Of a DNA stretch of 64,000 nucleotides, positions 60,119-62,708 are shown one piece after another. Below the pieces are notes generated by a model. That model had not been told where the DNA came from. It did not search any database and saw only the letters and a list, made by a program, of their open reading frames with translations. The DNA is taken from positions 682,001 to 746,000 of the forward strand of contig CDRNST010000080.1 in NCBI GenBank assembly GCA_977016875.1, read 5' to 3'. This DNA is from Pavona decussata. Its lineage: Eukaryota. Positions within the stretch are counted from its first letter, which is position 1. Each line of letters starts with the position of its first letter. A program made the translations under genes and the position numbers.

Positions 60119-60481
60119 TCAAAACAAATTCAAAGCGTACAGAGCTGCGAATATCATCATAACCACGTTTGCAGAAACGGTAATGGCGCCATTGCAAGGA
60201 TTCTCGGCTCCTGCGGCCGTGACGCAACAGGCCACCTCACACTTCGTTATTTTATCTCCATCATCCTGAGGAATTTCTTCCCCATCGTCACACTTTTTTC
60301 TTGATTTTTTCACAAGAATTTTTTGGCACGCATCCTCTGGTCTGTCCTGTTTTGTCTTTCTCTGTTTTATAGTTTGCCTTCCAGCAAGCGTAGTCATCGC
60401 CGGTGCAGTTCACCTTCGTCTGCTTACTAGTGCATTCTTCCTCGGTTTTTCCATTGCATACGTAGCACTCGAAGGAATAAG
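60119..60481 (-). CDS. Ly6/uPAR exon, copy 3 (LU plus GPI tail), with a +1 frameshift in an A-run near 60295; has no exon 1 of its own
   Basis: Intact TTTACAG acceptor. Six T at 60294-60299 versus five in the other copies. All 12 Cys are present across the two frames. Confidence 0.75.
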
Positions 60482-60647
60482 CTGTAAATGTATTCAAGAC
60501 ACACTTCTCAGTACGAACATTGTACTTTTGTTTTTGCCATTTTCATTTAAATATCCACAGGGAGCCCAACGGTTGTCTGTTAGGAAGGCCTTAAACGCCT
60601 CAGAAATTCAGATTTAGTTTTAAACAAAATGTCAAATTTTCCTTCGA

Positions 60648-60930
60648 GTCGATCCGCGCGAAGTTATTTGTTTTAACTATTTTACTTTTAAATTCCTTTT
60701 AAATACCTTTTATCGTTTTTAGCGTTCCTTTCTATTTATAATTCACATTATTACTTTCTTATATTGTTTAGATGTGAATATCTTAGAGCTTTTTAAGTCA
60801 GTATCTCATTATTTTTTTCACAATTGTATAAAAGCACATGCTCTTTTTTGTCTTCTCATCTTGAACTTGAAAATGATCGTCGGACGGCCGAAACGACGTT
60901 CTCTTTTAGCGTTAACTTTTATAGTTAAAT
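60648..60930 (+). mobile_element. Penelope-like terminal remnant shared by units 3 and 4 (second copy about 62880-63940)
   Basis: Replaces intron sequence found in units 1 and 2 and ends in a minimal hammerhead-like motif. Confidence 0.6.
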
Positions 60931-61752
60931 CTGAATTCCTGTCCTAAAACTTTCTGCAAGTTAAATTTTAAGCTAAAGCACCCGAGCAGATCAAACTATT
61001 TGACCTTACACAAATATGTCTTGAATAGGTCTTAAAACGATGTTGGAACAGAGGAGACAACAATTTAAGTATTTTACTGAAATGCTCTCGTTGGGTGCCC
61101 GCCCCTGTATCCAGTACAATGTGTCATATACAGCTGCCGGGATAAAAGGCAATATTAATGTTTACGGTAGAACGGAAGTTATAGTTTGCTTTTATCATAA
61201 ACTACTTTTAAAGTTTCCCGTATATGGACTATATGATTTCACGTAATATCTAGCGAGAAAACGATAGTATTTATGATACAATTTTAATGGTAGTCCTCGT
61301 ACCAACCGACAGACTTAAACCGTATCAAAAAGTCGAAGTTTATTTTCTTTTCTGACACATCTTTGGAAAGAAGGAAATAAAAAAAACCTGATTAAATATT
61401 GGCTTTTAGAGCTGAAGGACTTGAAGTGAGCCCTGACTAAATCAATAGCTGACAGGTAAAGTGCGTTGCCATAGTTGTAAACCACAAAACATAAACTTTG
61501 CAATTGGTTGGTTGATTTTTGTCTCTCAGCCGAGTTTTGACCGCGACGTTTCCTAACCATTAGCTAAAAAAAAAGCCTAAAAACATTTTTATTCAGCAAA
61601 AAGGAATGCTTTGTCCACTTGAAGCGTAGCTTAGTGTTTATCGGCTTTCCGAACAACCCGGCCCAGGGTACTAGTACCGTCCTAAGTGCCCCTAAGGCAG
61701 CTTCTGTTTGTTCATTCTGCTGACGCATTTTCTTCCGCGCGCTACACTTATT

Positions 61753-61768
61753 GGCCGTTTTTATACTG

Positions 61769-61802
<34 letters not shown>

Positions 61803-61924
61803 AACATTTGTTGCTCGTCTGGTTATTCGTCTCTAGTATAAAGACGGGAACAAGACGCATTGTCCGTCTGGACAAACTATTTTCCGTTGTGCGTCGTTCA
61901 AGACGAATAACGGAAGATAATTCG

Positions 61925-61969
<45 letters not shown>

Positions 61970-62044
61970 AATAACCAGACGAACAACAAATGCTTGCCCA
62001 AGTTCTTCCAGACGGATAATGCGTCCTCTAGTATAAAAACGATC
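61753..62044. mobile_element. 292-bp fold-back MITE (PIF/Harbinger-like)
   Basis: Near-perfect palindrome with ATT TSD; empty site CACTGATTGGTCC in units 1 and 2. Confidence 0.88.
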
Positions 62045-62381
62045 ATTGGTCCAAATCGCCTTCAGTATGGTAATGCGTCTTGCTAGCGATATACTGAATC
62101 CTTATTTCATGTGGAATCCTTTTTGGTCTATTAAACATCTCAAATGTTTCCATATGGCGTGTTTGGACATAACTCATGTTGGCCTCAATCGGTCAATAAT
62201 GATTTTTCAGCTTTGATCCCATCTCATCGCCTCGTTCCCAGTAAACAAAAATTGCGGGAAACTTTACTTTTTCTTCAATAACATGAATGGTTTCTGTTGT
62301 GCTGTAGATTAACATATTCCCGATAAAATAGATATAATTCCTTTATACTCGGGTAAACCAGACAATCTTTTGTTAACTCAC

Positions 62382-62708
62382 TTGTTGTTTTTGTTGTTGT
62401 TGTTGACGTAATGGCGCCATTGCAAGGATTCTCGGCTCCCGCGGCTGTGACGCAACAGGCCACGTCACACTTCGTTATTTTATCTCCATCATCCTGAGGA
62501 ATTTCTTCCCCATCGTCACACTTTTTCTTGATTTCTTCACAAGACTTTTTTGGCACGCATCCTCTGGTCTGTCCTGTTTTGTCTTTCTCTGTTTTATAGT
62601 TTGCCTTCCAGCAAGTGTTGTCATCGCCGGTGCAGTTCACCTTCGTCTGCTTACTAGTGCATTCTTCCTCGGTTTTTCCATTGCATACGTAGCACTCGAA
62701 GGAATAAG
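62382..62708 (-). CDS. Ly6/uPAR exon, copy 4: LU domain plus Thr-rich tail, symmetrical phase 1-1 exon without a GPI signal
   Basis: TTTACAG acceptor; 327 nt; ends NGAITSTTTTKTT(A) followed by GTGAGT at 62381-62376. Exon 1 is presumably beyond the window. Confidence 0.75.

Follow-up and report, generated by a model that had tools for sequence, protein, structure and literature searches.

Within the window analysed here, a 64,000-nucleotide stretch of the coral Pavona decussata (C80:682001-746000, on a 6.5-Mb contig of a 602-Mb genome), a gene belonging to a coral-specific tandem family of Ly6/uPAR (LU) proteins has probably gained an internal head-to-tail repeat, by which a two-domain gene with a recruited splice donor was made. 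The original prediction, drawn from the letters of this stretch, had proposed two LU exons in one unit, a pre-existing GTGAGT serving as donor and a linker encoded by a microsatellite, and this central inference is supported by the anatomy of the DNA, by a second haplotype and by assembled RNA contigs. The upstream LU exon of the gene (copy 4 in that prediction) is designated exon A and the downstream one (copy 3) exon B; copies 1 and 2 of the family lie in the same window.

Anatomy and breakpoints of the two-exon unit

The four LU exons of the window are read on the minus strand behind a common phase-1 acceptor (..acag|CTTATTCC), with starts at 39336, 52105, 60481 and 62708, and each of them, read in phase 1, yields a 12-cysteine domain, YSFECYVCN...CDVACCVTAAGAENPCNGA, which in copies 1 and 2 is followed by the tail ITVSANVVMMIFAALYA.. 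and a stop codon. Exon A (62708-62382, minus strand, 327 nt, phase 1-1) carries the 12-cysteine LU domain YSFEC...NPCNGAIT. As had been predicted, it leaves the family consensus right after NGAIT, loses the glycosylphosphatidylinositol (GPI) tail and runs into an (ACA)n microsatellite (62382-62407, minus strand) coding for STTTTKTT, the domain being continued by a Thr-rich linker, STTTTKTT(T); this tract varies in length, falling short of the reference by 6 nt in the other haplotype and by about 12 nt in the RNA contigs. The exon ends at GTGAGT (62381-62376, minus strand), the recruited donor, which in all other copies of the family lies within an intron. The new intron between the LU exons (60482-62375, minus strand; 1,900 nt with the donor) is a second copy of the intron-1 segment reaching from a breakpoint, X, to the acceptor. 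Exon B (60481-60119, minus strand) follows with an LU domain, a tail resembling a GPI signal (..NGAITVSANVVMMIFAALYALNLF) and a stop codon, and is frameshifted in the reference haplotype. The phase-1 donor of copy 4, the exon length of 327 nt and the phase-1 acceptor of copy 3 were as originally given, and all coordinates of that prediction proved correct.

The first exon, expected beyond 64 kb, was located by a wider scan of the contig at 66010-65959 in extended window numbering (C80:748010-747959, minus strand), where MKTLPVVLLVFCAIIFV and one further G precede GTGAGT. Judged by inspection, this signal-peptide exon, MKTLPVVLLVFCAIIFV(A), is conserved with its phase-1 GTGAGT donor in copies 1, 2, 4 and 5. 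Intron 1 of the copy 4/3 gene is 3,250 nt long; its 3' part occupies 62709-64000 on the minus strand and extends past the end of the window. Between copies 4 and 3, from 60482 to 62381, no homologue of the signal-peptide exon is found. Since the intron of copy 4 leads to an exon 1 and none lies between the copies, copies 4 and 3 are considered to form one transcription unit. The earlier claim that the signal exon and promoter of copy 3 are gone agrees with this lack of an exon-1 homologue at 60482-62381; copy 3 may or may not once have had them.

By BLAST of the region against the window, 60180-60802 repeats 62408-63035 at an offset of 2,228 bp, and 62045-62381 is homologous to intron 1 of copies 2 and 1. 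The latter homology stops exactly at 62381, equivalent to 54022 in copy 2 and 48296 in copy 1, and the join to the copy 3 intron is hence placed, as predicted, precisely at a GTGAGT already intronic in copies 1 and 2 (parental-type sites at 48291-48296 and 54017-54022, respectively, minus strand). The parental X site, ..GGTTACGTGTCAC|GTGAGTTAAC.., is kept in copy 4's own intron at extended 65112-65107. The subfamily comprises eight LU exons in the genome, all on the contig of the window, and exon A is the only one fused to the GTGAGTTAAC intron piece. At the joint a TTAC microhomology (62408-62411, minus strand) is present, the exon reading ..CCATTAC|CGTTTC and the parental intron ..GGTTAC|GTGTCACGTGAGT. 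A head-to-tail repeat in one transcription unit, an exon of symmetric phase and a single first exon, by which intragenic exon duplication is recognized, are all found in this gene.

The proposed course starts from an ancestral gene that would have comprised exon 1 with the signal peptide, a phase-1 intron of about 2.5 kb and an exon 2 coding for the LU domain and the GPI signal. The segment bounded by X, at 846 nt of intron 1, and by Y, directly behind NGAIT in exon 2, would have come to be present twice, joined through TTAC, and the upstream LU exon would thereby have lost its GPI tail and stop codon. This exon would then have passed through a short sequence grown into the (ACA)n microsatellite and next reached the only internal GTRAGT of the old intron, which could work as donor for a symmetric 327-nt exon (phase 1-1), its splice partner being the acceptor of the downstream LU exon, itself left unchanged. 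Within the 2.8 kb of copy 2's intron 1, the true donor and one internal site are the only occurrences of GTRAGT, and because this single internal site lies within 2.8 kb and the breakpoint falls a few bases upstream of it, a chance coincidence is unlikely. The (ACA)n tract stands in place of 5-7 bases between the joint and GTGAGT, and presumably grew out of them; the sole internal GTRAGT of the parental intron is 5-13 nt beyond the joint. Either an intragenic tandem duplication or a deletion between two full copies would give an identical end structure; a one-step intragenic duplication is slightly more economical, given the single-unit paralogue g663k (C80 near 663 kb), the counterpart of the copy 4/3 gene. 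Of the rearrangement between tandem copies that had been envisaged, the placing of two LU exons in one unit is retained, and the outcome is refined to one gene with an internal repeat.

The same locus was examined in contigs of a public assembly (ENA ERZ25073805), all of which may stem from the reads of one individual. One of them (L008) is 99.995% identical over 20 kb, junction and frameshift included. Another (L007) is 96.5% identical with the same junction, has a coverage of about 70x versus 66x, and is most simply regarded as the other haplotype. In L007, the microsatellite has 6 nt less, which preserves the frame and gives an exon A of 321 nt against the 327 nt of the reference; an open exon B extends from YSFEC to ..ALNLF and its stop codon, and a 776-bp element found at 63036-63811 of the reference is absent. 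The frameshifted open reading frame (P0007) is also present on two other contigs, and both it and the read-through frame of exon A are found on a contig of 818 kb. The rearrangement clearly predates the divergence of the two haplotypes. Near-identical tandem copies with a microsatellite at the joint are typical places of assembly error, so a junction made by collapse or chimera of two ordinary tandem copies has to be considered. Such a mis-assembly is very improbable, because the same junction is found in independent contigs and in a second haplotype that has another microsatellite length and lacks the 776-bp element; in addition, RNA contigs continue from the end of exon A into the linker and not into a GPI tail, and in four DNA runs 54-60% of the words sampled from the stretch are present. 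Mis-assembly, named in the original prediction among the things that would overturn it, is thus not borne out at the contig level.

The frameshift of the reference haplotype resides in an A6 run of exon B (60299-60294, minus strand), one A longer than the A5 of copy 4, at which AAAAC stands in the other haplotype, leaving the frame intact. A premature TGA follows at 60290-60288 (minus strand), 63 codons into exon B, giving an end in ...KKKV. For this additional A, either a homopolymer error or a truncation of the second domain had been foreseen. The truncation is upheld by the TGA. As for the additional A, a real allele is the most likely explanation and an error is less so, since further contigs of this haplotype repeat it and the other haplotype lacks it.

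RNA contigs, divergence and rival readings

Contigs of the runs X1, X3 and X7, labelled as the coral and originating from three studies, and of the metatranscriptome X14 were placed on a reference interval (L009) corresponding to window 60081-66080. X14 covers repeats only and is uninformative for the copy 4/3 gene. Depth of X1, X3 and X7 is zero over the unique intron (L009 4001-5400), while exons and transposons are covered, and these runs hence behave as RNA. In each of the three, one contig covers the 3' part of exon A up to L009 2333, which is the edge of a repeat-masked stretch (2298-2332). The X1 and X3 records resume after 15 unplaced letters at L009 2632, 4 nt before an LU exon start, and this resumption point, together with the mismatch counts, fits ..ACAA abutting CTTATTCC and aligned against ..ACAG. 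The X7 record (plus strand) has 87 letters beyond 2333, which by depth arithmetic do not lie on 2246-2297. In contigs from three studies, the end of exon A is joined to an LU exon start via about 19 nt. Immediately beyond the donor, the intron (L009 2201-2297) carries no contig of X1, X3 or X7, the depth at 2201-2400 being fully explained by the contigs that end at the mask.

Which LU exon follows the linker is indicated by a T at exon position 90 and a G at position 138, as in exon B of the other haplotype and unlike exon A. A contig with the exon-B-specific G at position 246 and the GPI tail is present in X3 and X7, so the tail of exon B is expressed, even though no first exon belongs to exon B itself. 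Taken together, these observations support use of the donor at 62381 and transcription running through exon B. An RNA check of the 62382-to-60481 junction had been proposed: the contigs do connect exon A's end with the beginning of an LU exon, and the exact letters of the joint fall inside the masked stretch. The X1 record is 345 nt long and has the same 30 letters at both ends, which makes it a cycle with a period of 315, i.e. 327 minus 12, and this period fits a shorter, in-frame microsatellite allele.

Several points weigh against the two-domain gene as proposed. The RNA evidence consists of assembled contigs and not of reads, the run type of X1, X3 and X7 was guessed, and the joint lies in the masked 2298-2332, its letters being unseen. 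The contigs differ from the reference at several sites in ways that match no local paralogue, and are therefore ascribed to alleles or individuals other than the reference. What follows the linker was placed on the exon of copy 4 and not on that of copy 3, no contig of these three runs covers exon 1 or spans the whole transcript, and X1 holds no copy-3 tail. At the level of the DNA, the reference allele is frameshifted in exon B, the ratio of nonsynonymous to synonymous substitution (dN/dS) between the two domains is about 1 (0.6-1.9 between units), and with pseudogenes of the family in the neighbourhood the product may not necessarily be kept by selection.

Some of the RNA points suit a reading in which the contigs do not reflect linear splicing from A to B, and represent instead a circular RNA of exon A (315/327 nt) or cycles in the assembly graph, proteins remaining single-domain and exon B being reached only when exon A is skipped. 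Besides the placement on copy 4's exon and the missing tail in X1, this would account for the X1 contig being an isolated cycle with a period as long as exon A, and no contig ties exon 1 to either LU exon. However, the circle and the graph cycle both still require the linker to abut an LU exon start, and therefore an active donor, for which the usual partner, in a pre-mRNA reaching exon B, would be the next acceptor downstream. Furthermore, the LU sequence after the linker has the copy-3-type letters at positions 90 and 138, and the X3 contig is not a closed cycle and occurs alongside a copy-3 tail contig of similar depth (12.9 versus 21). A circle or cycle is quite unlikely to be the explanation, and splicing of exon A to exon B in a linear transcript would be the preferred reading.

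Over 1,621 shared columns, aligned with MAFFT after a 6.6-kb insertion had been cut from copy 1, copies 3 and 4 differ by 6.5%, copy 4 and g663k by 5.4%, copy 3 and g663k by 7.5%, and the alleles of the two haplotypes by 2.3-3.2%. The maximum-likelihood tree, (c3,(g663k,c4)), is a near-trichotomy with support of 89/91 and a very short internal branch. Since the informative sites are mosaic, gene conversion is indicated, and the tree does not choose between duplication and deletion. The DNA and the splice may be real and the product without function, a neutral by-product of fast turnover in the tandem array that is already decaying. This is conceivable, albeit doubtful. Ongoing gene conversion and rearrangement, as implied by the mosaic sites, would suit it, as would the frameshift of the reference haplotype, the dN/dS range between the units and the pseudogene-like copies upstream of the window, namely g647k (C80 near 647 kb) with an in-frame stop and g663k without an exon 1. 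Yet the junction has persisted, the units being more diverged than the alleles are; the other haplotype retains both domains with 12 cysteines each and the GPI tail; and the gene is expressed in three studies.

Nor does the substitution pattern single out the copy 4/3 gene, as dN/dS is about 1 or above across the family, intact single-domain genes included, with every cysteine conserved. Between copies 1 and 2, 20.5 nonsynonymous changes stand against 0.5 synonymous ones, and the synonymous divergence of the exons (0.009) is far below the divergence of the introns (0.098), which suggests gene conversion of the exons combined with diversifying change in the loops. Because dN/dS is near 1 between the domains and family-wide, with all cysteines kept, selection on the two-domain form is unproven.

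Fold, predicted products and genomic setting

The gene is a diverged Ly6/uPAR family member, as judged from its fold, nearest Atlas clusters, cysteine pattern, signal peptide and GPI-like tail. The AlphaFold2 model of the exon A product has a mean confidence (pLDDT) of 77.7, and among the top Foldseek matches nearly every one is an LU protein or a three-finger toxin (probability up to 0.98, but E>=0.06). With VIA-align, the best match is uPAR D3 (Z 8.1, root-mean-square deviation 2.8 over 85 residues, 22-25% identity), followed by Lypd6, GPIHBP1 and a three-finger toxin at Z 7.0-7.4; PSCA and Lynx1 are further structural matches. The LU framework is present, with CxxC near the N-terminus, two neighbouring cysteines (CC) and C-N near the C-terminus, and the 12 cysteines (C5, C8, C16, C25, C32, C50, C56, C63, C80, C84-C85 and C95-N96) are kept in every aligned family member. 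No LU profile of Pfam (PF00021, PF00087, PF17064) is matched significantly, only PF17064 (QVR) appearing at E 0.2-0.5 with 11.8-13.1 bits versus a cut-off of 27.3; the sequence is too diverged for Pfam, and membership therefore rests on fold and cysteine pattern. The nearest Atlas clusters are cnidarian UPAR/Ly6 proteins (language-model neighbours, 0.93, 183 shared features). An orthologue of uPAR/PLAUR was considered and rejected, as the gene has two domains and not three, its identity to D3 is 22-25% and its nearest relatives are short single-domain coral proteins. The earlier words "uPAR-like" and "mucin-like" are accordingly kept for the architecture, and the former carries no orthology.

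The subfamily is narrow, with 26 of 1.84 billion cluster representatives matching at E<=1e-3, 23 of them in a single stretch; the other three, long relatives of 488-989 residues with 3-8 stretches, give weak and partial matches. No clear two-domain relative is found among these 26 weak-to-moderate matches, and a scan of JGI metagenomes gave no relatives.

By inspection, exon B and all single-domain paralogues end in ..NGAITVSANVVMMIFAALYALNLF, a typical-looking GPI signal, and exon A has no such tail. The intact allele, that of the other haplotype, has both domains with all 12 cysteines each and the GPI tail, and is predicted to encode a two-domain surface protein of about 244 residues (by frame arithmetic), consisting of a signal peptide, LU-A, a Ser/Thr linker that might be glycosylated, LU-B and a GPI signal by which it could be anchored. 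The reference allele would give an unanchored protein of about 1.5 domains, with seven cysteines in the partial domain and the GPI signal lost; nonsense-mediated decay is not expected, because the premature stop lies in the last exon. As exon A is symmetric (phase 1-1), its skipping would restore the ancestral one-domain GPI protein, and would have made the rearrangement cheap to tolerate.

Each repeat unit later gained a transposon insertion of its own, with terminal repeats and target-site signatures. The downstream unit carries a 290-bp palindromic miniature inverted-repeat transposable element (MITE; 61755-62044), which is found in both haplotypes, is absent from all other units and was inserted after the duplication. 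In all four RNA runs this element has a very high contig depth, up to about 12,000 in the metatranscriptome, and MITE copies appear to be abundantly transcribed somewhere in the genome. The upstream unit has the 776-bp element (63036-63811) with terminal inverted repeats GGCTTCACACTA.., of which at least 40 genomic copies with 92-97% identity exist; its insertion is recent and polymorphic, as it occurs in the reference haplotype and is absent from the other.

Elsewhere in the window, copy 1 has its exon 1 at 49208-49157 and its LU exon at 39336-38952, and copy 2 has them at 54945-54894 and 52105-51745, all on the minus strand. Three of the eight LU exons of the subfamily (g647k, g654k and g663k) sit in a segmental duplicate of window 31.5-61.7 kb. 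This is a three-gene block, C80:640001-665500 (L030-L032) corresponding to window 31510-61754, with an identity that declines from 97.6% to 89% toward the copy 3/4 end; g663k has no exon 1 because the boundary of the duplication falls in intron 1. A conserved mini open reading frame starting with ATG, ATGCCGTCTTTCGGTTACGTGTCAC (MPSFGYVS), ends in phase 1 at the intronic GTGAGT of every copy (48297-48321, 54023-54047 and extended 65113-65137). The possibility that this GTGAGT is a true exon end in the other copies was dismissed, as the mini frame has no signal peptide and RNA depth on the parental X site (L009 5027-5032) is zero. The window contains two runs of N, at 9039-9306 (268 bases) and 17995-18137 (143 bases).

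A related coral and comparison with known systems

In a related coral (ENA ERZ26692669), the locus L026:9933-14355 contains a 324-nt LU exon without a tail, ending in ..NDAILSQQTKSP (..SQQTKSP) ahead of CAG|GTAAGG (phase 1); the LU exon that follows is intact, GPI tail included, and its own exon 1 has been removed by a 498-bp deletion. The end of the 324-nt exon recurs on a second contig (P0011), and the first 86 nt after the break match, by sensitive BLAST, a spot upstream of copy 5 in the Pavona decussata genome. A genome search with the novel sequence following the LU exon at L026 returned an interspersed repeat only. A two-LU gene of independent origin may thus be present at this locus. 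An LU-like relic (L026:10585-10817), strongly diverged and about 62% identical to LU exons, is intergenic in each array unit of the related coral. That the Pavona decussata gene is a functional young surface receptor segregating with a truncated allele, and that the same solution arose independently in the sister coral, is rather unlikely as a joint claim; if both held, single-domain Ly6 proteins would have a recurrent and selectable way of becoming uPAR-like multi-domain proteins.

Multi-domain Ly6/uPAR proteins have been assumed to be born by internal duplication, and the known examples are too old to show the route. In the copy 4/3 gene, the breakpoints, the microhomology at the junction, the drafted intronic donor, the microsatellite turned linker and the later transposon insertions can still be read. 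With intact and truncated alleles coexisting, the gene offers a natural experiment on the birth of a domain repeat with a breakpoint inside a coding exon, on the switch between an anchored two-domain and an unanchored form, and on the retention of newborn architectures.

Among vertebrates, the multi-LU GPI proteins uPAR/PLAUR, C4.4A/LYPD3, TEX101 and CD177 share with the product predicted for the intact allele of the coral gene tandem LU domains, one signal peptide and one C-terminal GPI signal, a likeness at the level of the fold and without orthology. These proteins are ancient, and in them every LU domain is encoded by two exons. The coral gene, in contrast, has one exon per domain, domains that are 97% identical in DNA, breakpoints that are readable and a linker encoded by a microsatellite. 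In the evolution of snake three-finger toxins, loss of the membrane-anchoring region, a domain of an LU-superfamily gene, is reportedly due to structural change; there is no evidence for the coral gene being a toxin.

Within Cnidaria, a survey of Ly6/uPAR proteins (2026) describes about 43 LU proteins per genome, with 1-3 LU domains, a signal peptide and a GPI or transmembrane anchor (PMC13719153). The coral gene would fit this set of architectures, and since proteins with 1-3 LU domains are known among cnidarians, a two-LU protein is not new in kind; the architectures of that survey were drawn from annotated proteomes, and the origin of multi-LU genes is not documented there (PMC13719153). 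In the spider bivalent toxins Hc1a and DkTx, a small disulfide-rich domain was likewise doubled with a short linker derived from flanking sequence, but this bivalency arose within one exon and without an intron, unlike that of the coral gene (PMC13172734). With classical intragenic exon duplication, the coral gene has in common the head-to-tail repeat in one gene, the symmetric-phase exon and the kept frame (PMC13172734). In the textbook case, both breakpoints are intronic and the exon is copied with its own splice sites, whereas in the coral gene one breakpoint lies inside the last coding exon, removing the stop codon and GPI signal, and rescue came from an adjacent donor-like hexamer of the intron. 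A breakpoint within a coding exon and a donor taken from a pre-existing intronic hexamer are the unusual points of what is a clear and fairly young domain duplication, a variant of a known process and a case well suited to teaching and testing rather than a new principle.

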